Assembly: GCF_964204865.1 (NCBI RefSeq)
Contig: NC_135259.1
Coordinates: 15,748,001-15,812,000, forward strand
Reading direction: 5' to 3'
Source: Styela clava
Lineage: Eukaryota
DNA: 64,000 nt
Shown here: piece by piece, positions 12,601 through 52,392 of the stretch
Layout of the letters: every line of letters begins with the position of its first letter
How positions within the stretch are numbered: position 1 is the stretch's first letter
Made by a program: the position numbers and the translations under genes
Notes under the pieces: model-generated
What the model was told of the DNA's origin: nothing
The model's input: only the letters and a program-made list of their open reading frames with translations
The model's database searches: none

Positions 12601-13796
12601 AATATTATCCTAAATAACAAGCAAAACTGCCTGAAAGTTATCAAATTACGTGTATTAGGTCTTATAATGGACAGAATTTTTGACAAAGGTTCATACCGTG
12701 TCCTATTCCCTCTTAGGTACATACAATACAAAATGAAAACGATAGCGAAAGCTATTCAAAACAAATTTTGTTGTTCATACAACATGATTTTAGCGATGAA
12801 ATAGTTTCAATGCCAACAAAGAGATAGATGGTTTTTGAGAGAGAGTTCGAATCATATCCTGTATCATGCATTCAACGTTTTGTGTGCCCAGCACTAAGCG
12901 TGAATGAATGAAAACAAAATAATGGAATCAAAGAGTTTGTAACAGGAAGCATCTGCTTAATGCTGATCGAGTTATATATTTGTTTTGAAGATTTGAAGAT
13001 GTATTCTATCAATTCGGCACAACTACCGTTGAAACACAATTTTGGCTGAGGACTACTTGTTCACCAGAATCGACCAGCGAAATAGTCATATAACACACAA
13101 TTTTTAAAAACCGCAAAATTTAGGGTAAAACAACAACAGCAACAACAACAACAACAATAACAGTAATCTATTCCACAACGACAATTTAGACGAACGATTC
13201 ATATGCTCATTTGCCCAATTTGAATATAATAACACAAAATGCTTGAAAGCAGACTTACCCGGAGGAGCAGGTTCAACTGTGTATATATTTACAGGTCCCT
13301 GATGAACATATTGTTGTCCAATAACTGGTTGATGCTGATTAATGTTGTTTGTAATCTTTACCTATAAATATATGAATATACATTATATAAATATATATTT
13401 AAAAATCTATTTACGCATTACATAGTTTGCCAACAATTATTAGCCATTACTTTAGAATTGTATTTTTGTGACATATGCAACTTTATATGCCTTAATATCC
13501 CCTTGAATGACATTTATTCAATTAAATCTATTCTATTCGGCGACTTTAAGAATTGATCTACAAAAGTTGTTGGAATTTGCAGTTGTTTTACGTTACCCAG
13601 AGCAGACAGATGGATTTTAAAATGGCGGATATGAAGAAGTTTTGAAAACAATTACAATTTTAACAAAATATGATGTGGTTTCCAAATTGTTTATGCTTAA
13701 CTTACAGATAATTTCGACTTACACGTTCGGTAGGCTTTTGTGTTTCTTCCCGTTCTGACACATTCGGTTGGTCATGAATCTTTGAGAGGTGTGCGG
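615..13796 (-). CDS. NLR-like (NACHT NTPase) gene 1, multi-exon; 5' end and last exon unresolved
   Basis: Phase-compatible GT-AG exons (minus): 13723-13796, 13259-13361, 11989-12032, 11075-11120, 9296-10431 (NACHT), 8697-8862, 7996-8300, 5326-5451, 4492-4659, 4003-4128, 3699-3848, 3189-3296, 2548-2685, 2178-2432, 1430-1633, 615-806. Splicing gives the winged-helix motif FHKPIQ|DFLAA, then VRNFVCGL and IILLHEC (HD2). The C-terminal phase-0 exons of 108-255 nt are less certain. Confidence 0.75.
2782..3018. mobile_element. MITE/foldback repeat with ~80-bp imperfect terminal inverted repeats (GGTACTCCCGTAGTATGTGAACCAAGATGGCGGACAC family)
   Basis: Left arm ...cgtagtatgtgaaccaagatggcggacacc... is the reverse complement of the right arm ...ggtgtccgccatcttggttcacatactacgggagtacca. 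Related copies at ~10791-10962, ~13972-14112, ~21290-21371, ~41880-41946 and ~58059-58170. Confidence 0.8.
6363..7510 (+). repeat. ~140-bp tandem repeat (about 2 copies), second copy interrupted by a hAT element
   Basis: Unit cggtccagtgattttggcttattgcag...aatctaaagacat...gctggaaaaattatt starts at ~6363 and ~6501. The second unit resumes at 7417 after the insertion. Confidence 0.7.
6561..7416. mobile_element. Non-autonomous hAT transposon with a nested second hAT MITE (~6905-7335)
   Basis: TIRs CAGTGTTCTTCAACC / GGTTGAAGAGCACTG; exact 8-bp TSD ATCTAAAG (6553-6560 and 7417-7424). Inner element has gtcggcaacc...ggcccgcgggccggatccggccc and ends ggttgccgccccctg. Confidence 0.85.
9296..10431 (-). 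CDS. NACHT domain exon of NLR-like gene 1
   Basis: ORF 9245..10363 extended to the acceptor at 10431. Walker A TIIVGGAGQGKT, Walker B LLILDGLEK, sensor-1 VLATTR, VQISGYS, KTPMF (HD1). Ends at the CAG|GTGAGA donor. Confidence 0.92.
10791..10962. mobile_element. MITE copy (same family as 2782-3018)
   Basis: ctcccgaagtatgtgaaccaggatggcggacaccgg ... acatacttcgggagtacca. Confidence 0.7.
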
Positions 13797-24833: not shown

Positions 24834-27168
24834 CTTCGCAACTCAATCGCCAAAGAAAGTTGTCTGCGACGATGTCATATTTTCTATTGTTGAACTGCTC
24901 TATTAGAAATAACACTGAGATTATTTATTATCTTAGTTTTTTAGGAACTGCATCCCGATTTTTTGAAGTAACATATTTCATCCCCGTTTTAGCTGAATTT
25001 AACTGAACTCTATGCTGATTCGCGACAGTCGACACTACCATATCATCTATTTTATTCTGATATTCACCTCAGTCGCTTTATGGCTGTCTAATCACAGCGT
25101 TACTCGCCATCTAACTTTAACTTTACACGCTTGTCGTAATTTGTTAAATAGGACGATATAATTAATCACGCCAATTAGAATAATATTTGAATATCATTAT
25201 TCGACGTCACGATGTTTCCGATTCAATTATGACTAATTATAAGTTAAGTGATATATTATAAGTTTCGTCATGCCTGGTTGCTCGGATTACCAATTGTAAC
25301 CGATGTTATGGTTGAACCAGCTTTGCGCACAACACTACACATTGGCCTTTTCATAAATGCGTTAATATACACGAATTTGAGTAGTTATTCACAAGCTTAA
25401 ATTTTGATTGTTTATAGTACAAGGCAACTCTATTTATGGTTATGGCTTAATTAATAGAAAACTAGGAAAAACATATAAATGCCTCGATAAACCCTCAGCA
25501 GAATCAAACATACACCGAAAATTCGCACGGTGATTTATATCTACTTTTTATAGTTTTTATCCAATCACTATTCAATACTACTTGTCAAATAATTTTAAAG
25601 CTATGGCCTTGTAAGGCAATCATTCGCACCTTTCGCTGTAAGTCTGCAGAATAAATAGCCGTATTCGATAGTTACGTCAGCAATGCTTGAGGAACAATAT
25701 GCGCGAAGATAAATCCAAAATTTCAACTGAATTGCGAACTCTTGGACGAAGTTAAAACATTTATGTACTAATCGTACGAAACTTGTCAAGAGCCAACGTT
25801 TCTGACATAAATTAATAATGTATTAATATAACAAATTGTGACAAAGAAAAATATTCGGTAAACCTTTTTAGAGAATGAGAAACCATTGGCGATTAGGAAT
25901 GAAAAAAAGGTTTTCATGTTGTATTCAGTTCAATAGTTGTTATATTATAGTTGACATCTAGTAATGAAAGAGTGAAAACAAGTATTTCCAGGGCTGAAAC
26001 GAGCAACTTTCCAGTGAAAAAAGTGTAAAACAGTAAGTAATTTTATTCATTAGCTGTTTCGCGTTGGCCATCGATAATGAATTTAATGATGAGACATCAG
26101 CAATGTCCTTCCAGCATAAACTGGACACGAAATGTACCTATGGAACGTTTTGCTTACTTGTTGTTGTATTTTTCGTTTGGTTCTTGGTGTTTTCATTAGG
26201 GCTGTGTCGTGAACAATGCTTCGTAACTAATGTCATTTTTATTTGTCAAATCTCATTAAAGCTTTGTTAGATGCTCAATGTTTCATCCAAACTTATTTAA
26301 ACCATATTTATGTCGCCACGCCCACCCGGCGATATTCCAGCCGGTACCGATGAGCGACCTTCATATTCATATATTTGAGCATTGACCTGCTGTTGTTCTT
26401 TGCATGGAAATCAAATCACGCAACAGCTGCACCTAGGAGGTCCATTTTCGCGTTGTTCTGGAAAAATTAAAACATATAAGGTAATGCTTAAAACTTGTCA
26501 ATTTCTAAGTTACCTGCTGATTCGAGCAATTGAACAAATAACTCTACTAACCATGAAGTCGAATTACTGAATCACTCGATCTTCTTCTATGGCTACGTCT
26601 TTCGTAATTTGGTAGGAGGTTTCGTAACTGGTCCTGTGTATCCAGAGGAAAAATCAGAAAAAAATGAATTTATATAGTCATACGGATTTACCTAATTATC
26701 GAAAAGACAGCTGAATCCATTTTTTTCTTAATGGCAATTTTAGTTTTACGCAGTATGGGTTATATGCAAGTAACGAAAATAGAACTTGAAATAATACTCG
26801 TAAGTATTTTTAGGAAAATAGAAATTTATTGGACAAGGATGATTTTCTGGATGATACAAGGATGATACAAAAAGCCATACGCATAGAAAAACGTGTTTAA
26901 AAAAACTTTATTTTGTAAACCTGATTTTGTTGTGTTCGAGTTTGTGTTGCCGAAATATTTCCGTGCTGATGAAAGGTCACTCGCGCATTGCCTTCAATGC
27001 GTACACCGGTTGCTCCACAAACTGCAGCCGCAGAATCAGCACGTTGACTTTGAACTTGTTCTTGCAAATAAGACGAAAATGAAATATTTACAAACAAAAG
27101 GTCGTCAAGCAAAATATATTTATATGTAAAATAAATAAAAAATGAACATTTTGTGTCATAAAACCTAC

Positions 27169-27953
27169 CTGGATCTAACAGCGGATATAAAAGTGCTTGC
27201 GAGTCGTTAGAAATCTCGTTTTCATTTGCATGAAGTGAGTACTTCAAGAGAAACGTGAACGGAACGGTCGGAAGTGGGTTAGGGGGATTCGCTTGTATAC
27301 TCCTGCAGTGCTGACGAAAATCTTTATCTACGATGAAGCTGAAACCATCTTCAGGGAATACAGAGAAACCTCTAGGTCTGATTATGGATATCACACAGTT
27401 AACCGTACTATTCAGAGGAACCCACATCACTTTTTCCATTGGAAAAGTTCTTTCGAATTTTATTGAAGAGAATCTCCGCTCAATTTGTTTTTTTAGTTCC
27501 TTTTCGTCGAGAGTAAAAGTGGAAGTGAAGTTTCCATTTTTGTCGTGGTAGACCGAGTTGCTGACATAGATTTTAGAAAAGCAAACATAATTTATCGCTT
27601 TTTTGATAGTAATCAAAAATTCAGTGAAGTGATTAATTTCCAAATTAATTTTTCTGTCAGCCGTAAAAGCTTTTTCAAAGAACAACCAGGGAGAGTCATG
27701 GGATTTTTTGCTGAAGACTCGAAATCCTGCATTTGAGTTAGCAAGCCATGTCTTTATGTCAAGTTCCACGGTTCTCTGAAATTGCGTTCCTTCAGGCTCA
27801 CATTTAATCACGGGAAATACTTGAATGTGGTCGTCGATATCTAGAATCGCCATAGGATCGTAGTTCAGCGATAGTGAAATCTCGATGTAAGTGCTCTCTC
27901 CGGAATAATGAGTCTGCAATCTCCAACTTCAATATTTCCACCGGCAGAACCAA
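27169..27953 (-). pseudogene. ZU5 (plus UPA-like) exon with a frameshift
   Basis: IGSAGGNIEVGDCRLIIPERAL in one frame, then EISLSL...VFPVIKCEPEGTQFQRTVEL...W...EINHFTEF in ORF 26897..27919. These are typical ZU5 motifs (GGxL..LxIPxGAL; SPVIxCxPxGxxFxxPVxL; HFS/T). Confidence 0.85.
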
Positions 27954-28884
27954 CTGCAATCCAAAATTAAAAGGAGCAGACAGTTAATGAATTTTGACGC
28001 AATCCGATTCGTTTCACATCATTAAATTTAGCAAGTTCATTTAAGATCTGCACGTCTGGCCGGCACTATTTCGTGAGTGGTTATGAGGTTGCTCGTAATT
28101 AAAATGAGTTCACTAAAATTTTCCGTTTTCATTTTATGGATTGTAGAGATGAAAAATCAAGAGTATATATATGTGCTGGGGGTAGTGTGTTGAAATTTTT
28201 ATTTTTGGTCAATTGAAAAGAAACTGTCGATAAACAGTGATTTTCCGATAATCGGCAAATTTTTCGCTGTCGTAAAGGAAACGAAATATCAATCCGGACC
28301 TTCGGTGAAAGGATGAAATAAAGAATAAATAGTAGGGTGGCGGGATATAAAGACAGACAGACAGAGCGATTGCGAATGAGAATCTTATAAAGCGGAGATA
28401 CTGACTTTCTCTTGATTTCTTTACAAATAAATGTTTCATCTTCAATTCTTGTGAATCCCCGAAGGTAATTATCAAATTCTGAAAAAAAAAAATCATTTTT
28501 GTGTCAAATAGTTAAAACTCAGAAAATCTATTCACGTGCCAGTGTATTAATTAGTTTTTCTATTATTCTGGAAAATGAGAGAGCTATGCACAAACATGTG
28601 GGCACTGGGGAAAAAAATGAAAATTTTATCATTAATTCCCCGAAAATCATATGCGGTAACTTACCAGTAGCCGTATCGGGAAGCGGATAACTCGACTACA
28701 CGGACAACTCATCATCCACAAATCGATTATGCAGGGTACCGTACTAATCCCCGCAAAAAATATCCAATTTCGGCAGTAATTGAAGGATTTTTTCAAACCG
28801 ATAGTAAGAAATATTCTAATATAAAGAACAACAACATAATAAATAACAAAACGATCCAAAGAACCCAATAGAAACACTAGTTAC

Positions 28885-31216
28885 GGGATTCAATCCCTCA
28901 TTTAGAGCCTCTTGAAGAACATTTATGCATTTATCACTCGGCTGACGATGTAACAGCTCCAAGCGTTCGGTAACGGATGATATTAGCGTAGGTAGAAGTC
29001 CTTCAGACTCGTCGTCTTTATTTAATCTGTCTCCACTGCTGATGTCAAGGTGTTTTATCTAGTCAAAAGGAAAACATCACTCAATCTTTGCAGTCTACAT
29101 AATGAAGACGCATCTTGGTAATTTAAAAAGTAAAAGTAATATATTTGTTTTCGAGGCTATCTCTGGAAATCAAATGTATTTTAAAATTAGACAATAGACA
29201 TGTTCATTTATTTGTTGCAATAAAAGCAGTAGTGTTGGTTCTACGCCACGACCACAAGTAAGGCTATATATATTGTGTACTAGTAGAAGATTTGTAATAT
29301 GTGTTCAAATTGTACCACTGTTTCCACTTTTTACCTATTTATTACGTGGATTAGATGTATAACTTGTAAACTGTGAACTATGGAATTCATAGATTTTGCT
29401 TGTTTAAGCTTAGATATCTGTAGAATTGGAATGACACAAGGCTGAATAAATATATGTTTTATTATATTTATTTTCCTTTTGCGCATAATATTAAATATAA
29501 AAAAAAATACAAAACTCTAAAATTTCTTGTTTTTTTTGTAAATTACTTGCCTTTATATCAGTAAATAAATAAAAGATAGCTGGAGATAAAGGTTGATTGG
29601 AACGCATTCTTAATGTGTTTAATTTGCAATCTTTAACAATTCCCATCACATGTTCGCACCCTGTAGCTCCCAATTGGTTGAAGCTGATGTCAAGTTCTTT
29701 GAACTGAAACAGTATTGGCACTCATATTAGTCATCTAGAGGTTTTAAAAATAAACTGAGCAACAAAAAATAATAATAATGAAATAAGTGAAATTTTTTCA
29801 AATAGATTAATCTCAATAGCAGTAACTTAAATATTTAGCTGACAAAATATTTCCTCACCTCAGCATTTCTGAGCGATATTTTAAAATTTTCCAGGTGATA
29901 AGCCGTCAGATCGCACCGACTTATGTTAATTTTTTGCAATTTGTTTTGTTGAATTAATTTCCCAAGAGTTGCCATACCAGCAACACCAATATTATAGTTT
30001 TCGCTGATGGTTAGATTCTTCAACTGAAAAAAATAAGTAAATCACACAAAAAAAAATATTTATGACCTATGGTATGTTTTATGCAAATGTATCCATTCGT
30101 AATTTCGTTCGATAAAAACTTTTACTTTTAGTTTGTTTAAATGTATATAGAATTGACAACTCATTCCAGTACGCTCATATGATTTATTCATATTAGATTA
30201 TGAATCAGAAAAACGACACAAAAAGGAGGCCGACCGTAATATATCGAAAAGATTTTTCGAAAACTTCCAAATGCTGAGGAGTCAAGGCACACTCGCTTGC
30301 ATCCAGATTTTCAACCTTGCAATTTTCGACAATATTTCCCAAGGACTCAATCCCTTTCATTCCCATGTCCTTGTTGAACACTACGCTTAATTCCACAATC
30401 TGATAAAACCAAAGAAGTTTATATAAAACACAAGAATCTTTAGAAAATTTGCCATTATATGATTATACATGTTTATTTTTCATGATTATTGATGAATAAT
30501 CCCGTAACTGTACCGATCAACTATGTTTTATATATATATTAATAATAAAACATGAATAGACAGACTACTTAGAAATATACAGCTACAAAAAATATCAGAA
30601 ATGAAGAAAAGAAATTAAACTAGTTAAACATTGGAAGGTATAAGCCCAGTAGCAAAAAAAAAAGAATTCGACTTGTCGAAGATTGCAACAATTTTTCAAA
30701 AAGATACCGTATGTAGGTTCACTACATCTTCAATAAATATCCGTCTCAGAGATAAAAATCTTTGTATCTTGCAGCGCAGTCTTCAACTCAATCATCTCTA
30801 GATCATTAAGACTGCACATATTCAAAGTCAGTTTCTTGCTGTCACAATGATTAACTATTTTTCCCAAACATTTGACACCTTATCCTTTCATATTCCAATT
30901 TTGACTGAAATTCACTTCGTGTATCTTGAAAATACAGAAAACTAATATAACCATCGCTAAATATAGCATACACTCTTTTCCTCACTCTCTCAAAGAATAA
31001 AAATAAATAGACGTTAAGAGTGTAAGTGTACCGTAATTGTTGAATTTCTTAGTCTCTCATAAAGCGTCTGTAGACTTCCAGCTGTCAGTTTGCATGATGA
31101 TAGTTTGAGGCTTTCAACACGTGGCAGCAACTGCATAAAAGAACCCACGATGTCCATCTTGCTACTCATTGATAGATCCACAGATGACAAATTAAGATTT
31201 TTCAGTCGTGTGGATC
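28885..31216 (-). pseudogene. Six ribonuclease-inhibitor/NLR-type LRR exons (three of 165 nt, others 153-185 nt; all with phase-0 donors)
   Basis: LKNLNLSSVDL...VESLKLSSCKLT; IHEVNFSQNWNM...LTLNMCSL; IVELSVVFNKDMG...LDASECALT; LKNLTISENYNIG...INISRCDLT; FKELDISFNQLG; IKHLDISS. Confidence 0.88.
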
Positions 31217-31880
31217 CTGCTATATGCATGTGAAAATATATCCTTCGATTAAAAATAATATTGCATGTCAACATCAGATCATATTGAATTTCTGAACCTT
31301 AATTATTTTTTCTCATTTTAGTGAGATTTTTAGCGCTGCGAACCCGTCACATACAGTCGACAATGTCCGCGAGACTCGCATTTCCAAAACCGATTGGCCA
31401 AAGTTTTTAGCAGTTCAAGCACAAGTCAAAGTAATTTGTCCTTTACTCAATTGACCCCACCAACCGTGTCCCCGTATAAAAAACATTGGGAGCAGAATAC
31501 AGAAACTAAAAAGACATTTAATTTATTATGTGTGTTGTAATACGTTCGTAACATTTTTGGAGATTGCTTGCATTGACAACAGTGTGGCGCTGTTTCTAAA
31601 AACATAAAAACAGGCCTTATTAAGTTTTGCACTTTTTAGTCAATAATGTTTCACCAAACAAATACACTTTTCCATATTAAGCAAACCATTTATGTCAATT
31701 GTGTCATCAGAGATTATTTTTTCTCGCGGTCGATTTAGGCTACAGCTGTTTTTGAAAAGTCATGTATTGAAAACAACGTGGACTTAATGTAATCCGTAAG
31801 TGTCAAAATCCTAAATATATTATGTAAAAACTAATTCAGCAACATAAAATTTTTGCATGAACTCAACTCTATGTCAAGAG

Positions 31881-32711
31881 CACATCGTCACGCTAATAAC
31901 TGAATTGCGTAAGTCATTTTTAGCAGTTTTGAGAAAAACGTAAAAAACTTCCTAATGATATTGTTATGCAATTGAGAGTCAATAATTTGCCATGGTTCAA
32001 TTTTTTGATCGTAGCCGGATTTAAGTTAATTTGTATGACGCAGTTAAGTGACGTCATAATGGCGCACTGTGACTTAGGAAGAAATGTGAAAAGACTTGGG
32101 GACATACGCAATTTTGAATCTTTACTATATGCACCAGTCCTGAAAACTAAACATTCCAAAAACGAATGTAATTCTCACTATCTACAATGTCTAATCCCCA
32201 AAATAGCTAATCAGTTTCAATTGCATTACTTTTTATGTTTAAAAATATATGTTTCATCAATATAACATGTTCTGCACACCCACCGAAATGAGAATGAGAA
32301 TAAATATAAAGAATATAACAGCAATGCACCCAATATAAAAGCCAACCAAGGTGAATTGGACTCGGACAGTGAATATCACAAGTGCACGTCTTCCTATACT
32401 GTGGTATAAATTCAAATTAATACGCGCTAAGCTAGAATCCGAGATGCAAAAACTGGAAAATACTTAGCCGAGATTATTTTGCCTTTGTGACGTCACAATA
32501 GTCCTGCGGTAAACATGATAATTCATTGTGACGAAACAATTGAACAAATGTGCATGTCAAAATCTCCATTTTTATAGGTTCCGGAATACTTAAAATAAAA
32601 TCTGAGTTAACAGACAGGTGCGCAGCCTTACACAAAAAAAAACCTATTTTAATAAAAACTCAAAATCGCCAAAAATGACTTACGCAATTCGGTTATTAGC
32701 GCGACGACATG
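31881..32711. mobile_element. Non-autonomous DNA transposon with ~50-bp TIRs, in an intron of gene 2
   Basis: cacatcgtcacgctaataactgaattgcgtaagtcatttttagcagttttgag versus the reverse complement of ctcaaaatcgccaaaaatgacttacgcaattcggttattagcgcgacgacatg. Confidence 0.8.
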
Positions 32712-33179
32712 TATCAGCAAGTAGTAGTGTAGTTGTAGTATCTTCTCAGTATTTGTAATTTGGTCAGTATATGCCAATTTCATTTATTTTTAAAATAAAA
32801 ATTGTACCACAGAGCTACATCTTCGTTGTAACAGTGCAAGGTTATTCTAGTTTCTTACCGAACAGTGTTTTCGCGTTCTCCATATTCTTATGCAAGGACT
32901 CCAGTGCTTTAAATAGACTCTCCCCTTCTTTGGTTAAGATGTCTTCATGTAGATTCCCTGGCGCATCGCTGCTCGCCATTTTAAATAATACTGCTAAAAT
33001 GTTAACGGCTGCGAAATAGGAAACAACACAAGTGCATCTAGCTCAGCTGAAAAATACTTGTGCGTTTTAGGTAAATGTAATATGTTGTATTTATTTATAA
33101 ATACCGTTTTTGCCCCACTGCGCGGGTGAGGCCAGGGTTACTGGCAAATTTACATGTTAATTATATAAAAGTGCATAAA

Positions 33180-33698
33180 AACTTTACGCACGATCAACCA
33201 ACCATGAGCAGTGTCTTTTAATGTGTCAATAGAAAGCCTGCGCTTTCAAACCGTTAAATATATACATAACCACAAATAGAACTTGGCGCCGGGTAAGTTA
33301 TATTTCAAACATCTCATTGAAAATCACATTATCCGGATTACTCATACAAGTTTGTGTAAGTGCCAGATGATACAAAAATATTCTTCTATGCATTTGAATG
33401 TTTACAAACAATCTGACCAGAAATATTTTACGACCTCGAACTAACCTTTGAATCAACTATACATAAACTCGAAACATATGCTTGTAATCAGCCCTCCATA
33501 CATCAGATAAAAGCAAAGTTCGAAATTTGTTCGACGTCCTCCGCGTACAAAATTCAACAAACCGTGGCAACCGATACGGTCTGCTACTTATCAAAAGCGA
33601 ATTCGTACGTAACAATTTAAGGCTAAATGAAAGCCTTTTGACAGCACCGCCGAGGGAACTTTGTTTTCAAAAGTTTTCTCATGGGCTTGTTGTTAAAC
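33180..33698 (-). pseudogene. NACHT relic, 3' part (downstream of the LTR element)
   Basis: SLLISSRPY (sensor-1-like, 33577-33600) is in frame with the 5' part across the reconstituted empty site; AHGWLIVRKVF is HD2-like. Many stops and no Walker B. Confidence 0.5.
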
Positions 33699-33966
33699 TG
33701 TCAAGATTTATTTTTGTCAGGATTAGACCGAGGTTCTATGCACACATTAAACTTGATCCAAATATTCATCAGCCGGACGAACGGCCTTTATTAAACAGTA
33801 TACAGTAAGATTCAGCACGATATAATTACACAGTTCAATAGACAGCAGTCCTAGACAAAGAAGCCCGTGACCAACATATTCAGGCTTCACGTCACTTCTC
33901 AATTATTGCGTCATAATTACTTTAATGGAAGTCAACGTAAACAAGTCTGTAAATCATGATACAACA
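33699..33966 (-). repeat. 3' LTR (268 bp)
   Basis: Direct repeat of 38382-38652 with about 8 substitutions and one 3-bp indel by eye. Confidence 0.95.
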
Positions 33967-33981
33967 TCTCCCTTTCTTTTT
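33967..33981 (-). other. Polypurine tract
   Basis: AAAAAGAAAGGGAGA on the minus strand immediately before the 3' LTR. Confidence 0.9.
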
Positions 33982-34159
33982 AAAGTGATTAATATGACGC
34001 ATTATTTATATTCAATATTAACATTTAAAACGTCATAAACATATAATCAAATCCTAGTCCCTATCTAGCTACTAGTAGAGGGTAGACTACCTCTGCAGCA
34101 TACAAGCTTTGAGGATTATTCTGCCTCGATGTAAAGCTTGTCACCTATCGGACTAGAAA

Positions 34160-36065
34160 TTACATTTCTTCAATGCATCGTCTTGGCGATCGACGTATTC
34201 TATTTGACCTCCTTACACTAGGCTGTGTAGGATGTACGTTATTGTCTCTTGAAAAATTATGATTCTCATCCTCTTCTCTGGACGATATATGTGTTGGTTC
34301 AAAAACATCTTCTGCATCCTGAGTATCTCCTAACATTCTTCTAGTCATACGTCGTTTTCTCCGAACTGTACCTTTCGGAGTCTCAATCAAAACTGATCTT
34401 GGAGCAAAGTGTCGGCTTAACACTCTCCCTTCAGTTCTCAAATCTGGTATCCAAATTCTGTCGCCCGGAGATAAGTCATCGCCCTGAACAACTCTGTGTC
34501 GACGATTATAATCATTTGTCATTTTACTCCTATATTCTCTCTCTCTCTGACAAAGTTTAGAGTATTCCGGAACTTTCGGTATAAGTTCGTCTGGATGGCA
34601 TGGTACTCTAGTTTTCAGCTTTCTGCCCATACGCAGTTGTGAAGGCGAATATCCATTATGCAATGGAGTATTTCGATATGTCAGCAATGCGAGATATTCA
34701 TCATCGCACTTGTTCAGAATTGCCTTCATCGTCTGGACAGCTCTTTCAGTTTCACCATTTGACTGACTATATTTCGGTGATGACGTAATGTGCTCAAAGT
34801 TCCATTTCTTAGCAGATTCTTTAAACAGTCTTGAATCAAACTGTGGACCATTGTCTGAAAATAATACGTCACAAATACCATGGCGACTAAAAATCTTCTT
34901 CATTTTCAATACAGTTTCCGCTGTATCAACATTCTTGGTCACGATGCAAATTTCTACATCGCGAGAATAATAATCAACTGCTAGAAGATAGCTGTTTCCT
35001 TTGTAATAGAAAAAATCAGCGCCAATTCGTGACCATGGTCTCTTCGGAAATTCTGTTCCTCTCATTGGTTCGATTCGATCTCGTCTATATTTCTCACAAA
35101 GATTGCAGTTTCTCACAACTTTTTCAATATCACGAGACAGTCCTGGCCACCAAACAGAATTCTTCGCATGTTCACGCGATTTACTCACACCTTGATGTGC
35201 ATCATGTAAATATCTCAATATGTCTGTTCGGAGTACTTCTGGAATCACGAGCCTGTTTCCCTTCATCAAAAGATCATCATGTATATTGAAGTTCGCTCGC
35301 TCGTTCCAGTACTTATTCACAGGACCGTATAATTGCTTTTTGTTTTCCGGCCATCCAAATTTAACATTGTGCATTACAACTTTTATAATGTCGTCTTTCT
35401 TCGATTCACGTCTAATTTCATCCAATCTGGAGTTTGAAGCAGGCAAGTTAACCATTATGGATTGAACATAACAGTTCGTATCAGCTAACAACTGATTATC
35501 TTCGTCTAACTCTTGGATAGGTCCTCGGGACAATGCGTCAGCGGTGTATAGCATTTTACCCGGAACGTGCACAATTGTAAAATCATATTTCATTAACCTC
35601 ATTCGAAATCTTTGTACTCGAATGGGTAGCTCATCTATCATCTTCGTAGATAACAGTGGTACAAGAGGTTTGTGGTCTTTCTCAATTTTCAGACTCTTCA
35701 ATCCTATCAGCATAATTTGCCAATGTTCCATAGACCACGTAATAGCTAACGCTTCTTTCTCAATCTGAGCGTATCTGGACTCTGTTTCAGTCATAGATCT
35801 ACTTGCATAAGCGACAGGTCTGAGCTCTCCTGAAGCTTGCTTTTGAAGCATAACAGCTCCAAGTCCATATCCACTTGCGTCAGCAGATACAACGATTTCC
35901 AATTCTGGATTGTACATTGCAAGTATTCGATCTGACGTTAGTTCCTCCTTTACTTTCTCAAATGCCTTTTCCTGTATTGGGCCCCAACACCAAGCATACT
36001 TTTTCTTCAAAAGATCACGTAAAGGTTTCGTATGTTCTGACAAATCAGGAGTAAGTTTCATCAAT
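34160..36065 (-). CDS. pol: pol: RNase H plus integrase (frameshifted from RT near 36065)
   Basis: ADASGYGLGAVM, YAQIEKEALA, DHKPL, ADALSR; integrase HDAHQG..C..C, ADFF, SDNGPQF, GETERAV. Confidence 0.93.
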
Positions 36066-37295
36066 CTGATTCGCCATTCCCAAAAATCGCCTGAGCGCTG
36101 AAACATCAGTAGGAGTTGGAAAATCGTTTATGGCTTTAACTTTTTCGGGATCTTTACAAATTCCTTTCTCCCCAATTATTTGGCCTAAATATTCAAGTTT
36201 CGTAGCATGGAACACGCATTTATCAATGTTTAGCGTCATACCCTCTTCTTGGAGTCGATCCAGAAGTTGTTTTAAACATTCATCATGCTTCACAGCGTCA
36301 GTACTCAAAATTATGTCATCCATGTGACAAGTCGTATTGGAAAATCCATCCAAAATGTGGTTCATTCGTTTTTGGTACAATTCTGGGGCGGATGAAATCC
36401 CATAAGACAGCCTCCGGAACATGAATCTTCCAAATGGCGTAATAAACGTCGTCAGTTTACGACTTTCTGGGTCAAGCTCGATTTGGTAAAATCCGGAATT
36501 CGCATCCAACTTGGTGTAAACTGAACCTTTTGCTATTCTTCCCAAAGTGTGTTCTACAGTGGGCATTGTGTATATTTCACGTTTTACCGCTTCATTAAGC
36601 TTGGTCAAATCAACGCACATTCTAATTTCACCACTGGGTTTTGGTACGACTACAATCGGCGCGCACCACTCACTTGGTTCGTCGATGGCTTCGATAACAT
36701 CTAGTTTCACCAAGCGGTTTATTTCAGCCTCTACTTTTCCTAGTAGGGGTATCGGAATTCTACGAGGTGTTGTCACACAAAAAGGCTTCGCTTCATCTTT
36801 TAAACGAATTGTATGTTCACCTTCCAATTTACCCAGTCTATTAAATAATTTGGAATATGCTTTCAAAACATCCTCCTTAGTGCGGAGTGAAGGTACGTTT
36901 TCCCGTGAGCCTTTCTTGCAATCAACTATTTTTACAGTATATGTACCTTTGACCTCATGTATTAAACCCAATTTCTGTATGGCTGGTATCCGCAATAGGC
37001 GTTTCGATGCTTTTCGCACCACATATACTTTTTCGGTGACCTCGATTTTGTCATGTGTCATCGTCATCCCCACATAGCCAACTACGTCTAGTTTGACACC
37101 ACCAGCTCCGAATAATTCTTTATCGGTCACTGTTATTTCACCAAAAGGCGTTTTACACACATTTTCGGGCATCACCGAAACTTGTGCACCAGTATCTATG
37201 CACCAAACAAGTTCTTCATTTTCGGTTCCAGCTTTTAGTTTAATAAATCACCCTGGATCATTAGAAAATTTCCTTTTCATACGCTTTCTGCGTTT
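36045..37295 (-). CDS. pol: pol: aspartic protease plus reverse transcriptase (with premature TGA)
   Basis: WCIDTGAQVSV upstream of ORF 36045..37175 in the same frame as gag; RMCVDLTKLN, KLDANSGFYQI, HMDDII, LRRFLGM. Confidence 0.93.
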
Positions 37296-38186
37296 TCAAG
37301 ATCGATTTATAGTACCCACAAAATCAGATTTTGGCTTGCTAGGGCTTTTTATTTCCCCAACATTGATCGGAACTCTGCTTTGACAAACATAATAAAAATG
37401 ACCAACCTTGTGGCATTTGTTGCATTTCTTGTGAGCAGCTGGGCAGTTATCTTTCCCGGCATGGTGCTTGTAATTGCAATATCGGCATTTGGTCCTGCTC
37501 TGGTCAGTGCTTATCCTAGCCCGACCTCGATATTTCTTCATTGGTCTTTGTTCTCTTCTTTCGTCTTCTTCTATGGCATCAATCATAGCTGTCTTTGTTT
37601 CGTTTAGTTCTCGACTGGTTGCTTCTTTCAGGGATAAAATTTGTATCACTTTTTCTAACTTAAGTGAGGCACCTGCATCATATAATTTCAGTTTTGTGGC
37701 ATCGTCGCGACAAGAAAACGTCAGCTTATCGCGTATTGCTTCATTCACAAAATCGGCAGGAAACTTACACTCTTGCGCCATATGACGGATTGCGTTTACC
37801 CATGCATCGAAAGTCTGGTCAGGCTCCCGATTTAATTTCAACCAAAATTTCTCACGCAACATAAGCTGCGGATCACGTTTTGTGAAATATTCATCAAATT
37901 TCTTGATCACGGTTTCATAGTCATCGCGATCTTCTGCAGGCAAAGCATCGCCGCCGCTTGGATTTGGCCTTTCCGCAAAAAATGTAAAATTTGCAAAAAT
38001 GTCTATTCCCTGATCGCCAATATGGTTTAAAAAAAGTCCAATCTTTTGTTTCGCCGGTTTCTCCGACATACCAGTAGCTTGTAGATAAATTCGAAATTTT
38101 CGATTCCATTTTTCCCATATCTGCGATGGATTTCCGCAAGCTTTTATATCAAGGCCATTTGGAGGTTTTACACAACCTTCAGCCAT
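37296..38186 (-). CDS. gag: gag with two zinc-knuckle motifs
   Basis: WEKWNRKFRIY; CRYCNYKHHAGKDNC and CNKCHKVGHFYYVC. Confidence 0.9.
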   Translation of the reverse strand: MAEGCVKPPNGLDIKACGNPSQIWEKWNRKFRIYLQATGMSEKPAKQKIGLFLNHIGDQGIDIFANFTFFAERPNPSGGDALPAEDRDDYETVIKKFDEYFTKRDPQLMLREKFWLKLNREPDQTFDAWVNAIRHMAQECKFPADFVNEAIRDKLTFSCRDDATKLKLYDAGASLKLEKVIQILSLKEATSRELNETKTAMIDAIEEDERREQRPMKKYRGRARISTDQSRTKCRYCNYKHHAGKDNCPAAHKKCNKCHKVGHFYYVCQSRVPINVGEIKSPSKPKSDFVGTINRS

Positions 38187-38363
38187 TACGCTTTGGGTCT
38201 TCGTAGCCTAATCCGGCTTCCCAAAGTATTGTAAATATCTTACTGTAATCGAGTACCTTCAGTCGCGCGATAACTCTTCAATCACTGCGACGCTGTAAAA
38301 TCGTTGTCCTACGATTTCAAGTTTTAAAATCGTCCGGTAGTCTTCAGGATTGCTTTAATCAGC

Positions 38364-38381
38364 ATCCCACTTCTGACACCA
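38364..38381 (-). other. Primer-binding site complementary to the 3' end of tRNA-Leu
   Basis: TGGTGTCAGAAGTGGGAT directly after the 5' LTR; matches the ...ATCCCACTTCTGACACCA end of metazoan tRNA-Leu(CAA) as I recall it. Confidence 0.85.
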
Positions 38382-38652
38382 TGTCAAGATTTATTGTTGT
38401 CAGGATTAGACCGAGGTTCTATGCACACAATAAACTTGATCCAAATATTCATCAGCCGGACGAACGGCCTTTTTTAAACAGTATACAGTAAGATTCAGCA
38501 CGATATAATTACACAGTTCAATAGACAGCAGTCCTAGACAAAGAAGCCCGTGACCAACATATTCACGTCCCTTCACGTCCCTTCTCAATTATTGCGTCAT
38601 AATCACTTTAATGGAAGTCAACGTAAACAAGTCTGTAAATCATAATATAACA
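38382..38652 (-). repeat. 5' LTR (271 bp)
   Basis: TG...CA termini; direct repeat of 33699-33966. Confidence 0.95.
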
Positions 38653-38900
38653 TTAAACTACACATTTTGCTGGGCTCGAAAAATATAAACACGCCGATGT
38701 TCATCAATCGTTCCAACGGCTAATGCTGTCTAAACACAACCCTAGGTGGCCAAATTACTGTCTTTCCTGCAAGAGATGTCTCCCAATGGACTAATGCTCG
38801 TAATTTACCGGAATTGATCGTACTCTTTAGTCCCGTTGTTTTACCCAAAATTCTGGTTCGAAAAAAACATTCCACGATCCGGTTTTCTTCCACACAAACC
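38653..38900 (-). pseudogene. NACHT relic, 5' part (upstream of the LTR element)
   Basis: GKLRALVHWETSLAGKT (degenerate Walker A) and LMNIGVFIFFEPSKM parallel gene 1's RTIIVGGAGQGKT...LNNVEMIHYIDCAKI. Confidence 0.45.
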
Positions 38901-39789
38901 CCGCGTGTGTGTCAAAAGAAATATGGCATTTTAATTGCGAAAATTGGCAATAACAGTTGATGTTCATTTATTTAAGCATCACTTGGTAAGATAGAAATCA
39001 CCATATTGACAAAATGGCTAATTGATTTATAGCTTTCTTAATTTTTTTCATAATTTCGACTTTGGCTACACCCATTAGGGGAAATCCAAAATACTGCTCA
39101 ATCTCAACGAAACCATGCAAACAAACTCAAACTCCGTAACTTGAACTACCATGAAATATTATCAATGGCATTGCTTTTAGCGAAGTTCCAAAATAATATT
39201 ATATGAAAACAAACAGGAAAGAATAGCACAACAGTTATAGTGGGCTACACTGACATGGGCAAACTACGACCTGTGGGCCAAATCCGGACTGTTGGGTAAT
39301 TCGATCAGTCCGCCTGATGCTGTCACAACCAAACTAAAAACAAATTTAGATGTTTTTTTACCTAAAAATAACTCGAGGGTTTATTAAAACTGCGATTAAA
39401 CTTAGTTTCGTCACCAGGCCTATTGTTTTTCAATTTCGCTTGTGTGACACTGTAAATATTGTTCATAAAACGTAAATTTTTACGTTTTACTTACATGGCC
39501 AGCCAGTCTAGGTGGGCAAAATTTTTGACAAAATCTCGCCCACCCTTGGACTCCAACAACATTTCTATTTTTTGGCTTAGCTCAATAACGAGTGTTATGT
39601 TGGATTCAATAAAATTGGAATTTAAATTATAACTTTTATAATGTTTATTTCTGAATGGGAAGCTGTGTTAATCTCAAAATAAAATCATTGTTCGCTGATT
39701 CATTCGTATGATGAAAATTTTTTTTGGATGAATACCAAATCAAAACTATTCATGCTATGAAACTGGTTTCTATAAACTTTTCGTTCCAG

Positions 39790-42700
39790 TCATTCGCAGT
39801 TGGCATTGGTTTTGATGTCTTTTCTCGAAGTACAAGTTCTTGACAATCTAAAAATATATTTATTTATAACTGGCCACCATGTTTCGTTTCAACCAATTTT
39901 GTAAATCGTAGACTGGTTGGCTGGTCAAACTTTTTTTGCGGTCGTTTATCTATAGCCTATAGGTAAAAGCTGCTTATTTTGTTTCTACCAGGGCTGGGAA
40001 TTTCGAATCGATTAGTAAATATTTCGAATCAATCAGTTCGTACGAAGTTTTCGAATTGCTAATATCTTGTTTTATTTGTTATCGCAAAACGTTAAGGCGA
40101 TTTCTTTTATTGAAGCCATGTTTTTAGAATGCAATTCTAACATATGACTCTTTTTTTCTTAGTGTTTCTTCAAATACAATTACATTTCCTAGTTCCAAGT
40201 ATTCGAAAATCGATTCGAAAAAAATGTTCGATCATATTCTGAAATTATCAGGTATTCAAAAATGCCCAGCGCTAGTTACTACTCTGGATAAGAGCATCAG
40301 AGTGGCAATTGTTTCTCAGGAATTTTAACGCGGGTTTTATAAGATTTTGGGTATATTTTTGTAACAAGACGGAAAATTGAAGCACATTATGAAACCGAAT
40401 ACTGATAATACGAAAAATATATTGCGCATCATGGCATATTCCGATTGGAACATGAATTCTCAATCAATTCGGTGACGTAATACGACTTAGCGGATGTGGG
40501 AATGTTGTCATTACCTGTCTTAAAACTTTGTTTATAGGAGATTGAAGACGCGTGCGAAATTCTTTAAACTCAATACCTCGCTTCAATATCGATTCTAGGT
40601 AATAACCACTACTTTGGAGAAAATGTTTAAAAAACTTAATTCTGAGTAAATTTATATCTACCATATATATGGTATTTGAGTATCAGTAATGGTATCAGTT
40701 TTGGTATGATTTATTACGATCGTTAGGATGAAAAAAAAGCGGTCTGTAGAATATCGTTCAGGGAATAATTTAGTAAAACGAATATGGAATAGAGTATATA
40801 TATCACCTGCAGACGCCCACCATAAAAATCCATCAGAACCTCCCTGTTATAGAGATATATATTGCGTTACCTGTATTTTTCCAGTTCAACAGAATCTTTC
40901 AAAGTTTCCGGAAGCGAGGAATGCTTTGTTTCAGGTAGTATAAGCGTTAAAAGTCCAGCAATTAAACTTGAACCTCCCATGACATAGAAAGGAATCCATT
41001 TTCCTGATACCTCACCTGAACGTAATAAATCGAAAATTGTTATTTAATCTTCACATTCAAACAACGACAAGTAGCGACTGACATGAGAAAAAGCTGTAAA
41101 CTCATTCATTATAATCGCACTACAGTAGTGATAACAGGAATAATAATATATTTTGAAAAAATACATTTGAAGCTAATATTTAACCAGACAGAGAGTACGC
41201 TCACGATATACAGTGACAACGACACAAACATACAATCTTGAGAACCAACCTGAGAAAGCGAGAAAGGGCGCCATCACACATGCTACCCCAGCCGAGGTAG
41301 AAGCTATTCCAACACCTGTACTTCGCAATATTGTAGGGAAAAGTTCGGCTGTATATAAATAAATCATTCCCATAGTCGATGATGAAAATACTTTTCCAAT
41401 CATCGCCATTGCAATACTGGCTTTTTCATCTGAACAAAATAAAATATGCAGAAAATATCTGTAATTATGCAGGATTCGTATAACTGAAAATAGCATTTGA
41501 AATTAAGAAGCTTTTTATAGCAATACGATTTTTCAAATGTCAACATTTGTATTGTATTATTCATCTGCACACATGGATTGTTTCATTAGTCATCCTACAG
41601 TTATGTACATAATGTAGCCGTGTAGGCTTACCATACGTCCAAGTTTAGCTGGGAGTGTTCCAATTTTGACAAGCCTCACCACCGTCCCCCTAGGTAAACT
41701 TAAATGTCCCGATCGTGCAATGCGGCAGTCATGAATATTTTTTCATTCAATAATACAATTTTTTACCGGAGTCAGTCCATTTACCCCTGATTTGCGACTC
41801 ATTTAATAGTTCGATGAGAAAGAGAGAAAACTGATGTATATATATTGTTATATATTGTCCAAGATGTCGCAAAACCTGAACCCTAACCTGGTACACAACC
41901 TGAGTTCATCTTGGAGTTCGCCATCTTGGTGCGCATACTTCCGGAGGTCCGAAAGAAGACGCCGAAAACCGAAACTGGTTATCGAGCGGCGGCACCCTTT
42001 GGGGAAGTCTAACAGTAACGTGATAAATAGAATAAGATCGAACTAAATATTTAATAAATAAATTAAAGGAAAGGGGCAATAGGTACGTCATGGCGACCTG
42101 GTATGTACCAAGCAATCACCGTTTCAACAAAAGAAAGTCGACTCATGCACCACAGACAGCCTCACAACAATATTATGACGGTGAGGTAAATATGGTAGGC
42201 AATAGTAAAGAACATTGAACGTTCGATTATGTGCATATGGTTGCAAAGATAACGATAAAATTGAATTTATCAGTATAATATGCCAGTTATTTTAAATAAC
42301 CAGTTATTTTTTTAATATAACGTTATTTTAACGCACAAAAGAAATCGCACATTTTCCAATATTACAAAATGAGTCTAATATCACTAAGCCTCGGAATCGA
42401 ACCAAGGTTTGTCATTTCCGAACTGGCCCGGTTTCTCTTTTCATATATATGGTAAGCCTATATATGCGATTGATGACACTCCGGTTCTTCAATTAACATT
42501 TGGAACAGTGCTGCCAGTATATTGTATGCATATATTGGTCGGGACTCGTGTTAATTTATTTTCAATACATAAGTCAAAAATTACGCAATAAACAATTTAG
42601 CAATAAAATAAAACTCACAAGATCCGAGCAGTGGAGACAAAATGAGGCACATTGCTGATAACAAAAAGGCAACAGATATTGACAAACGGCGTCCGAGCCT

Positions 42701-45700
42701 TTTTAGTCCAAAAAAGGCAAGTATCCATCCAGGTATTTCTGCCGCAGCTGATAGAAAACTATTCCAATATCTACTTCCGCCCAAGTTGGAAGTGTTATAT
42801 CCAAATGTATAATAACATACAAATGAAACCATCCTGAAAAACAAAATATCCACGTTCTGACGTATTCAAACTTCTATTTATTATTATTTTCGTCAAGACC
42901 AGAAAGTACACACAAGGCGCTTTTTATGGGATATAATCTGTGATATGTATGGGGGAACGAACTTATCTGGTTCTATATATACCCCTATTATTTTATTTCC
43001 TTTATGATAGATTTAGAGTAAAATACTGTACTTTCAATTTCTTACCATAACCAACATAAAATCAGAGTTCTTTTCAGCAAAATTCTGTTATGAAAAAGCA
43101 TGGATAACGATTTCTTAAAACTGACGTGTTTTCGATTCTTCGATTCAACATTGTTTTGCTGTGCAATTAAAATCATCATAATCAACGTAATTTCACTTTT
43201 TCAATAGTTAAAATATTTCGCGAAAGTGAATAAAATTACTAAAATTTGAAAAAACACATTGTTTGAAATGCCTGAAGAATTTGAAAATATGTTGAGGTAT
43301 AAGATGAAGGTTTTTTGTTGAAATAGGTAACAACACAGGAGTTGTAATCGGGAGTTATACATAATCAATCCAGAGGTCGAGTTTATTTATTAATTTGGTT
43401 TGTTCACGTAATTGCTTTTCACATAATTTCCCAATAATACCTCATTTTGGTCATTCATTCTCGTGTTTTGCATAAGTTCGACAAATGCTTCAGATGATTT
43501 CGATTTATTTAAAAATCGTTTTGCAATGTCTACCGCTTCCACAGTTCTTCCTCTAGACATCAACCAACGCGGAGATTCTGGCAAATAACTGAACGCGAAA
43601 ATGGTATTAAATGGATTTTTTGGAGGGAAATGGAATTTATTTTGGTTTAATTTTTGTGTATGAGCAATTGAGCATAGTATTGAAATTAGAAAAAACTCTA
43701 TAAAAATTATGTTATAAATGTAGTTACACTGCAGCACTAGGACTAATCCACGAGAGCCTAAAAATTGAAGAGAGTCACAGAGAGTCCAGAAATATAGACG
43801 AATACCTAAAAGCACCTCTATGTCTTCTTCTAGTAATAAGTTGAAAGAGATAGGTTCTATGGCTAAAGTCAAAATGTGGCACTTTTCCAAAACAACAACT
43901 TAATTTTATAAGAAGAAAATGATATACTACTGTTCTGAGAAACCTTTTCTAGCCTACAGCTACACAGTATCATTTAGGGGGGAATTGTAATTCGGGATTC
44001 TATTATGGGACATGTATATTGAAGCATATTTAATCGGTAAATAGCAAATTAAAATATAAATTGGCACAGATTGGTTAGTGGCGTGGTTGGAATAGACCCA
44101 AATCATGACCACACAAGTTAAACTCTTCAAATATTTTATTTGCAGCTCTGCAATGAACTCATTAGTTAAAGTAACATCAGAATTATAATATTTCATTAAC
44201 CAATATCGAATGTCCTACATGGCCCCTACTGACTTAGGCATAATGCAACCCAGACCAAACTCACGGCTCTGATAAGTAACTCAATTCACCAGAAAATAAA
44301 ACTTGGTAACAACAATACCTCACCAGTAATACGTCATAAAAAAGATGCAGAAGAATCCAGGAATTCTTATTATCCATCTCCAGTGGCCGCAGAAATGTGC
44401 AGTGAATGTCAGCATCATATAACCAACAGACCAGCATATATTACAAAGACATACAATGAGGCCTCTGTGCTCTTTCTTGACGAGTTCTTGAGCTGAAAGT
44501 CAAGTACAGCATTGCAGATGTTTATTCAATTTTCATAAAAGTACTCTAGTGTGTTCACCAGTAACAAGGCATCAAAATTAATATTGAACCATTAATAATA
44601 TTATTACTGTTTCCGATTACCATGGACAAATGTTAAGCTGTAAGTTATGCTGCCTCCACTGCCATACAACAAAAAAAATATCCAGCTCATCCAATAATTC
44701 ACTGCCAAACTGAATCCAAAAATAACCAACATTAAAATTGTGACGCATACAAGAGTAGCAGTTCTTCTGCCGAACCTAAAAAATGGATTTTTGTTAATAA
44801 CAAAATAGCAATGCTCGAATATATGTACTCGGAACCTAATGTATCGGTAGCCTATGGCCTATGCGACTTACCGTGAGCTCCGTTATCTGATCATTCAAAA
44901 GAGTCAAAAGCAAAATTTCAGATCCCATGACGTAGCTAATTACATAGATAGTCGTACAGTCACACCTGGGCAAAGAGCACTGGATTGTTTGATGGATGGA
45001 GGTCTTGTATGACGTAATGCCACGAGGTGTCGCAATATTGGGATTGAAATATCGAATTGTAATGACTGAATCTTGGCATAATATCTTTCAATCAAATGTT
45101 TGATTGAGCTAGATTTGTGATAAATGAGCGAAAGAATAAATGCCTTGTGGGTTCATAGGACACTTGCTCGAATTCGGGTCTCAGAAATAACACAAAATTG
45201 AAATTGAACTTATATTAGTTTTAGATTCCGCTCGGACTAATTGGATATTTGACCAATAAGGAAATGCATCACAAGTATCGTTTAAATTTAATGGGACTTG
45301 ACTACTCTGTAATGTTTCGATGTATTATACTTTTTTGGCATAAAGTGATTGCATACTTTTTTTCAATGACACATTTGTCATAAAACTCCCTACAATTAAC
45401 CAATGTACAAATGATCGAAATGGTAATGTTCCAATATGCCCGTTTAGAATCACTATGAAATGTAAAAAACAAATACTTGTCTGATAGTGCTCCAGAGATT
45501 ATTCCACTAGCAAGGGCACCGATTGATAAACTCGATGTCAGGAATGGTTTTTTCCACTCTTCGCCACAAACTAAGTTGAACTGCAGAATGGAAGTTGCAA
45601 ATAATCGCGGTCTCTTATAAGACACATGCACATGCAAACTCAATTTTTAAATTGCTGAGTCCAGCTCAGTCAAAATAAAAAATAAAAAAGCAAAATAAAC

Positions 45701-52085: not shown

Positions 52086-52265
52086 GTATATATGATATAT
52101 ATTTCCTAGCCGCCAAATTCTTGCTGATTGACCTAATAATCATACTGATCGAAATCAACAATAATAACGGCAAAATGAGATTTCTCTTTAGCTGTCTTGT
52201 CCAATTACCTTCTACATTGCATATACATCATATACTTTTTTATCGACTATTGAGACATAACTTAC

Positions 52266-52392
52266 CTCCATCGCCGCAGTTGTTTTGCCATCCCTATTGT
52301 CATATACAAAACCATCTTCACACTGTACGATTAAACTTCTATTCAATTGAATATAATCAGCAGATTGATTCTTTTGGACTTTGACAGTAAAT
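52266..52392 (-). pseudogene. Orphan SLC22 exon 3 copy
   Basis: FTVKVQKNQSADYIQLNRSLIVQCEDGFVYDNRDGKTTAAME|GTAAGT; no neighbouring exons in this orientation. Confidence 0.85.

Follow-up and report, generated by a model that had tools for sequence, protein, structure and literature searches.

The 64,000-nucleotide stretch of the Styela clava genome analysed here, referred to as the window (C13:15748001-15812000, with no N in its sequence), carries the gene LOC120338461 on its minus strand. The gene is transcribed, comprises 12 exons and encodes a 40-residue N-terminus, leucine-rich repeats (LRRs) of the NLR type, one ZU5 domain, one UPA domain, a 46-residue motif, a polybasic stretch and a CCVI end. 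Its exon model (Table 1) was built from stop-to-stop frames and the raw sequence, and a script that checked the phases found those of all 12 exons to be consistent. Positions given without a chromosome label are those of the window, and all genome-wide searches were run on the 377-Mb Styela clava assembly. A first-pass annotation, made from the letters of the window, had seen in this region an NLR/PIDD hybrid of the order NACHT-LRR-ZU5-UPA-like-RHIM-like-CaaX.

How firmly are the repeats of this gene tied to its ZU5-UPA part? We compared the Logan contigs of four sequencing runs, which stem from two studies, with window positions 26930-32929. As the segments that these contigs skip have minus-strand GT-AG ends, or GC-AG ends in one case (29551>29058), the contigs represent spliced transcripts. 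Within the LRR chain they contain the joints 31032>30924, 30757>30396, 30235>30023, 29859>29703, 29551>29058 and 28885>28478. The joint KKSRE/IGSAGG between the linker exon E8 and the ZU5-UPA exon E9 is found in two runs, and the following joint, which leads from the UPA part to the motif exon E10, in three; those from E10 to E11 and from E11 to E12 rest on the RefSeq model and on splice signals. Exons E2 to E8, from the first LRR exon to the linker, are phase-compatible. Thus, the LRRs are spliced directly onto the ZU5-UPA module, through the very boundary that the first-pass annotation had proposed, and the check for LRR and ZU5/tail exons belonging to separate genes came out in favor of one gene, as spliced contigs link the LRR, ZU5 and motif exons. 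The G/Q/N motif exon and the last exon ending in CSCCVI and a stop, which had likewise been predicted, are also present with good splice sites, as is the polybasic exon. From MAILD onward, the protein encoded by E9 to E12 does not differ from RefSeq XP_077973271.1, annotated as 'uncharacterized protein LOC120338461 isoform X1' (here P0001). A genome search found no close DNA paralogue of the gene, so that none could have supplied the spliced contigs; the other DNA matches of the gene region are an interspersed repeat at about 28570-28740, five short matches at about 28790-28860 and one at about 30455-30540.

Table 1. The 12 exons of LOC120338461 in window positions, with their features and the evidence for them. 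A slash marks an exon joint or putative cleavage position.
Exon	Positions	Strand	Features and evidence
E1	32859..32979	-	ATG at 32979, 40 codons + 1 base, GT donor; one spliced contig of run X3
E2, first LRR exon	31032..31216	-	185 bases; AG acceptor, GT donor; spliced contigs, phases
E3, LRR exon	30760..30924	-	165 bases, phase 0 to 0; in-frame TAA at 30882-30880; AT donor in the reference
E4, LRR exon	30235..30399	-	165 bases; spliced contigs, phases
E5, LRR exon	29859..30023	-	165 bases; spliced contigs; genome relatives in NLR clusters
E6, LRR exon	29551..29703	-	153 bases; GC donor; its open frame matches Pfam LRR_6, E 3.4e-4
E7, last LRR exon, irregular	28885..29058	-	174 bases; spliced contigs, phases
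E8, linker exon ending KKSRE, phase 1	28406..28478	-	runs X1 and X2 show the joint 28406>27953
E9, ZU5-UPA (FIIND-like)	27169..27953	-	putative cleavage site HF/T at 27631-27623; reference lacks 7 bases at 27886/27887
E10, G/N/Q/H-rich 46-residue motif, core GNARVTFHQHGN	26921..27060	-	joint 27169>27060; predicted disordered
E11, polybasic, serine-rich	26552..26633	-	good splice sites; within RefSeq model P0001
E12, ending CSCCVI, then TGA	26411..26457	-	good splice sites; CCaX-type prenylation box; same end in the RefSeq model

The repeats themselves are of the ribonuclease-inhibitor type, as seen from the LRR_6 match, the 165-base phase-0 exons and the relatives of these exons in NACHT clusters. 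Exon E5 alone has 86 other relatives in the genome at 31-42% identity, most of which lie in NACHT clusters on C2 and C8; the identity of the relatives within these clusters is 35-42%.

Downstream of the linker, the reference sequence breaks the ZU5 frame. All four runs, and hence both studies, have 7 extra bases behind position 27886 that are absent from the reference only, and these shift the frame from ...IIPERAL to IEISLSL..., thereby restoring the ZU5 frame. In agreement with this, the hidden Markov model (HMM) of the family matches the frame upstream of the break with its profile positions 3-26 and the main frame with positions 26-266. As the transcripts carry the 7 bases and the HMM positions run across the break, the reference has either a deletion allele or an assembly error at this point. 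The break also bears on a different partition of the locus, into an LRR gene and a separate ZU5/UPA-tail gene starting at MAILD, which is suggested by the start of XP_077973271.1 inside ZU5, at the first methionine after the frame break of the reference. However, the KKSRE exon is spliced to the ZU5 exon in contigs of two runs, the out-of-frame piece before the break continues into the main frame along the family profile, and the 7 bases found in all runs unite both frames. Unless the contigs are chimeric, two genes are therefore already refuted, and we regard this partition as scarcely conceivable.

For E9, evidence of a ZU5 fold followed by a UPA fold comes from sequence profiles and from structure prediction, which uphold the earlier assignment of ZU5 and UPA-like domains. 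A profile of four family sequences matches ankyrin ZU5 domains in the PDB (best E 3.8e-5). In further searches and in folding, the database model P0001 stood for the C-terminal part of the protein. Its AlphaFold model, computed with a 15-row alignment, has a predicted local distance difference test (pLDDT) score of 70-88 for residues 1-227 and of about 30 for residues 228-317, and a Foldseek search with it lists the ZU5-UPA-DD structure of UNC5b (3g5b; DD, death domain) first with E 2.2e-5, next the FIIND of rat NLRP1 with E 2.3e-4 and the ZU5-ZU5-UPA of ankyrin, and further down CARD8, with 228-250 columns aligned. The presence of both folds is thus supported by the predicted model. The Pfam ZU5 match of the gene is sub-threshold, and the whole genome is without a Pfam FIIND match. 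The family HMM recognizes one ZU5-UPA match in the gene and no second ZU5; a tblastn hint to another ZU5 at 52169-52366 on the plus strand (E 0.01) was given no support by this HMM and was rejected. Neither a CARD nor a DD follows the UPA domain, as Pfam detects no domain in the tail of the gene. Apart from its own model, the ZU5-UPA frame retrieved with phmmer from 1.84 billion representatives only one paralogue from Styela and, spuriously, a bacterial repeat protein, and word-based searches with P0001, P0003 and the ZU5-UPA-motif region of a paralogue on C19 (see below) yielded their own loci only or nothing.

The border between ZU5 and UPA carries a potential site of autoproteolysis. All four closest paralogues have H and F at this border, with T, S, S or C behind them, and the pattern [HRGE]F[S/T/C] is kept in 13 of the 15 aligned family members. 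From this conservation, self-cleavage of LOC120338461 at HF/T is plausible.

Behind the UPA domain, E10 displays alternating hydrophobic residues with G/N turns. When compared with the genome on its own, this exon matches itself only, and a profile of five sequences was needed to reach other loci. With this profile, nine loci were found at E 1e-11 or better, the next match in the whole genome being at E 1.4. All nine lie on the same strand as a ZU5-UPA match and between 0 and about 3 kb downstream of it; the eight besides LOC120338461, each with the motif after UPA, are the C19 frame, one copy on C9, four genes on C3 and two on C14. Across the loci the core of the motif follows the pattern [GD]-N-A-[RHT]-[VAT]-x-[FITN]. 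Because a subfamily on C8 has a Death-like domain at the corresponding position after UPA, the motif occupies the slot of a death-fold domain. The protein then closes with CSCCVI, which has a cysteine at position -4 and an aliphatic residue at -2 of the true C-terminus and reads as a candidate CaaX box; none of the other eight motif loci has such a box at its C-terminus (0/8). The tail therefore agrees with the proposal that a short motif, followed by a polybasic CaaX end, has taken the place of the death domain: Pfam detects no domain here, and the CSCCVI terminus is in place.

Is LOC120338461 an NLR? The first-pass annotation had placed a NACHT relic upstream of the repeats. Between 31300 and 40800, Pfam found no NACHT in candidate frames of either strand, which included every open frame of 31300-33700 and 38650-38911, and an HMM made from the NACHT exons of this genome, applied with filters off to all window frames of at least 15 amino acids, found nothing in this interval either. 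Most of the supposed upstream stretch is filled by a near-complete long terminal repeat (LTR) retrotransposon of the Ty3/gypsy type at 33699-38653 on the minus strand, about 720 bases upstream of the ATG of the gene. Its LTRs are 98% and 95% identical over two segments, and its frames comprise reverse transcriptase, RNase H, integrase and a gag-like one that weakly matches a zinc knuckle (E 0.042). Directly upstream of this element, at 40870-45650 on the minus strand, lie exons that by eye resemble a sugar/SLC22-type transporter (PESPRWL signature); two short pieces of them had no match in Pfam. The sole NACHT of the window is located at 9248-10459 on the minus strand (Pfam E 4.3e-9), 16 kb downstream of the stop of LOC120338461, and belongs, together with 8671-8862, to a separate NLR gene on the same strand. 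Upstream of that NACHT exon, a frame at 13259-13361 is rich in N, Q and G and is not matched by the tail-motif profile.

As there is no NACHT, and as E1 with its own ATG, which has an in-frame stop 21 codons before it, is spliced straight to the first LRR exon, LOC120338461 is not an NLR. The supposed relic dissolves into a retrotransposon followed by a transporter-like gene, and with it the notion of an NLR/PIDD hybrid at this locus. A single gene of the order NACHT-LRR-ZU5-UPA-RHIM-CaaX whose upstream NACHT has decayed would nonetheless be in keeping with the NLR-type LRR exons, with the succession of NACHT and ZU5-UPA in paralogues (the single open frame on C19, C13:14952500 and C4:17163000) and with an acceptor-like site about 30 bases upstream of the ATG, which from the sequence alone makes an upstream coding exon possible. 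Yet neither Pfam nor the genome-specific HMM yields a NACHT signal, the interval is otherwise occupied, and E1 begins with its own ATG after an in-frame stop and joins the first LRR exon directly, so that such a gene is already largely refuted and very improbable.

Within the introns, some further observations were made. The interspersed repeat at about 28570-28740, in the intron between E7 and E8, has about 39 copies in the genome at 74-88% identity. Repeats at 31730-32729 in the first intron reach a contig depth of 65-570 in all four runs; presumably these are expressed transposon families and not transcripts of LOC120338461. The intronic segment 30530-30643 is covered by contigs of runs X1 and X3 that then continue for 255 letters unlike the window, which could reflect structural variation, an alternative exon or chimerism of the contigs.

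LOC120338461 belongs to a lineage-specific family whose ZU5-UPA modules number more than 100. The four-sequence profile has 103 ZU5-UPA matches in the genome, for which we also count at least 97 NACHT matches. On their N-terminal side the modules carry NACHT-LRR, Death-NACHT, BTB-Kelch or UBA-repeat parts, with Death-NACHT-NOD2_WH, BTB-BACK-Kelch and UBA as the partner domains recognized by Pfam. The clearest intact NLR with such a module is the C19 frame (C19:15688631-15692542, minus strand), a single open frame of 1304 amino acids that encodes Death, NACHT, a winged helix of the NOD2 type, ZU5, UPA and the motif, and then stops. A related copy on C9 is interrupted by a transposable element with frames that by eye are integrase- and reverse-transcriptase-like. 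The four C3 genes, among them C3:21458000-21465999, have the layout BTB-BACK-Kelch-ZU5-UPA with the motif as the last exon, and so join the layout of a ubiquitin-ligase adaptor to a FIIND-like module; the two C14 genes encode UBA repeats, ZU5, UPA and the motif (RefSeq XP_077973865).

Other members have NACHT and LRRs ahead of the module. At C13:14952500, NACHT, LRR exons, ZU5 and ZU5-UPA follow each other within 8.5 kb, and C4:17163000 is similar. In the former region (C13:14952500-14962499), two successive ZU5-type frames come after NACHT and LRRs, a PIDD-like order, and the first of them has no HF[S/T/C] site. An array on C2 shows the succession NACHT > LRR > ZU5-UPA on both strands (minus, 2787372 > 2776740 > 2760461; plus, 359634 > 371428 > 397568). 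Different short G/N-rich exons follow UPA in the C2 array, on C4 and on C6, the last with a VQI-H-G string. The ZU5-UPA at C8:12285000-12289999 has an HFS site, and the exon behind it matches Pfam Death weakly and below the cutoff (E 0.0041); a canonical ZU5-UPA-Death-like layout coexists there with the motif-tailed forms of the family. The expectation that intact paralogues would carry NACHT, LRR, ZU5 and CaaX together is thus borne out by the C19 frame as far as NACHT, ZU5-UPA and the motif are concerned, and fails for the CaaX box, which none of the other motif loci shares. With no NACHT and a partly decayed appearance, the window locus is of lower value for further work, and intact paralogues such as the C19 open frame, the BTB-Kelch genes on C3 and the NLR array on C2 are the better targets.

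We therefore favor, as the probable explanation, that LOC120338461 is a transcribed LRR-ZU5-UPA-motif-CaaX gene without NACHT, a FIIND-like family member whose present copy is compromised. Several points weigh against it, on the side of the transcripts, of the copy and of the tail. That the four runs are RNA was only guessed, and it is the GT-AG-spliced contigs that argue for it. The joint of E1 to E2 (about 32858 to 31214) is seen in one low-depth contig of run X3. Exon E3 has one in-frame TAA and, in the reference, AT in place of the GT of a donor, and a contig of run X2 spans the TAA with no difference from the reference listed. Since a transcript contig also has this stop, only the skipping of E3 would allow a full-length protein to be made from the ATG of E1; skipping would preserve the frame, and a joint of E2 to E4 was not seen among the contigs. 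The copy is probably a decaying family member. The earlier verdict that it is broken holds for E3, with its stop and its donor, whereas the ZU5 frameshift is confined to the reference.

One may go further and regard LOC120338461 as a transcribed pseudogene, the remnant of a dead NLR-ZU5-UPA gene with no functional protein in any haplotype. Beyond the state of E3, the 7-base gap in ZU5 of the reference, the lack of a NACHT, the proximity of the LTR element to the ATG and the low contig depth of 3-10 point in this direction. However, about 620 codons between the stop in E3 and the natural stop are open in the transcript allele, all splice sites other than the E3 donor are intact, the frame would survive the skipping of E3, and RefSeq models a protein at the locus. 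A pseudogene is thus possible, but we consider it doubtful.

Further points on the other side of the balance concern the tail. Conservation cannot support the CaaX end, because it is unique to LOC120338461. Compared with Pfam, RHIM included, this tail and three other tail types gave no match at E up to 10, and among the chains of the PDB the motif profile matched neither RIPK nor HET-s; a search of the ESM Atlas with the tail returned no usable match. The core of the RHIM profile is I/V-Q-I/V-G, compared with V-R-I-E-G-N in LOC120338461. Hence, the label 'RHIM-like' denotes a resemblance only, and both RHIM membership and amyloid behaviour of the motif are unsupported. Cleavage, assembly and prenylation, as considered below, are likewise all read from sequence. 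Could the motif, then, be an ordinary short linear motif or a disordered linker, such as a docking site, a degron or a protease site, rather than an amyloid or RHIM element? Besides the missing similarity to RHIM and HET-s, this is consistent with the disorder of the tail in the predicted model and with the genome search by motif profile, which, at low sensitivity, found no free-standing partner carrying the motif. On the other hand, the motif stands exactly where CARD or DD is found in NLRP1, CARD8, PIDD1 and UNC5, and the Death domain in the C8 paralogue; proteins whose N-terminal parts are unrelated have all kept it; its hydrophobic residues alternate, with G/N turns, and other families have VQI-like or GN-rich tails; and in amphioxus, RHIMs take positions where a death-fold domain would normally be (PMC4262963). 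We consider an ordinary motif or linker quite possible, if somewhat short of an even chance.

How does the favored layout, LRR-ZU5-UPA-motif-CaaX, compare with known systems? NLRP1 of mammals and fish has the layout NACHT-LRR-FIIND-CARD (PMC11508797), FIIND being ZU5-UPA. For this reason the placement of ZU5-UPA behind the LRRs of an NLR is already known, and the statement that NLRs normally end in LRRs overlooks this case. NLRP1 and LOC120338461 have in common that LRRs lead directly into a single ZU5 and UPA; NLRP1 and CARD8 also share with it an aromatic-plus-nucleophile site at the ZU5/UPA border and an element after UPA, for signalling in the former and the motif here. The likeness to NLRP1 extends to the fold match with the rat FIIND, with CARD8 also listed, and to the NACHT upstream of the module in Styela paralogues. 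Unlike NLRP1, LOC120338461 has neither NACHT nor PYD, and in place of a CARD it has the 46-residue disordered motif and the polybasic CaaX end; its putative cleavage site is HF/T, compared with SF/S in NLRP1 and CARD8, and the Pfam FIIND model finds none of the Styela modules.

PIDD1 (LRR-ZU5-ZU5-UPA-Death) resembles LOC120338461 in having LRRs before ZU5-UPA, no NTPase domain and an HFS-type site (HFT here), and its released C-terminal fragment would find a counterpart, so far only expected, in a fragment that nucleates a complex. It differs in its two ZU5 domains, compared with one, and in its death domain, and the LRRs of LOC120338461 are of the NLR or ribonuclease-inhibitor type with 165-base exons. 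Overall, PIDD1 and CARD8 are nearer in layout to LOC120338461 than an NLR is. UNC5 and ankyrin, with ZU5-UPA-DD, provide the best fold match (UNC5b) and the best sequence-profile match (ankyrin ZU5), but they are receptors or cytoskeletal adaptors that do not cleave themselves and have a death domain at the end.

For the tail, parallels come from other quarters. Kajava et al. (2014; PMC4262963) described many immune-type proteins of amphioxus, one of them with NACHT, that have RHIMs at death-fold positions, and reported that RHIMs seem to be absent from tunicates. For fungi, bacteria and archaea there is a catalogue of NLR-associated amyloid motifs (PMC12261475). The RHIM proteins of amphioxus and the HET-s, PP and BASS motifs share with the Styela tails a short G/N/Q-rich motif in the place of a death fold within innate-immunity architectures. 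Unlike in the RHIM and HET-s systems, the Styela motif follows ZU5-UPA, shows no detectable sequence relationship to theirs, and a matching effector was not found. The extreme C-terminus, with its Cys-Cys-aliphatic-X box after basic residues and an extra cysteine, is like that of CCaX-ended lipidated proteins, namely the brain isoform of Cdc42, RalA/B and the PRL phosphatases. Those are small GTPases and phosphatases, whereas here the box ends the tail of an immune-type receptor, and in this family member only. We found neither the succession of ZU5-UPA and such a motif nor the expansion in Styela described in the literature. The claim of an undescribed architecture therefore does not hold for NACHT-LRR-FIIND, known from NLRP1, and stands for the motif after ZU5-UPA: the new part is the short motif in place of CARD or DD.

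What could such a protein do? By analogy with NLRP1, CARD8 and PIDD1, it would cleave itself at HF/T, and the LRR part would restrain the C-terminal fragment. Loss or displacement of the LRR part would then release the UPA-motif fragment, which might self-assemble via UPA and the tail motif, and in LOC120338461 alone the assembly could take place on a membrane through prenylation. For the NLR-containing family of Styela as a whole, we consider it unlikely, though worth stating, that an NLRP1-like release of the UPA fragment signals by an amyloid-type motif, with membrane anchoring in LOC120338461.

To our knowledge, NLRP1 and CARD8 are the only well-studied sensors that signal by 'functional degradation', with release of a ZU5-UPA-CARD fragment. 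In Styela clava the same module occurs more than 100 times, on NACHT-LRR, Death-NACHT, BTB-Kelch, UBA repeats or LRRs alone. If the motif is an assembly or templating element, the family would link FIIND-type release with amyloid-type propagation, two principles so far separate, and would provide a chordate counterpart to the NLR-associated amyloid motifs of fungi and bacteria. Were this true, NLR-linked amyloid signalling would exist in a chordate, parallel to fungal NWD2/HET-S, and in a lineage that has been reported to lack RHIMs.

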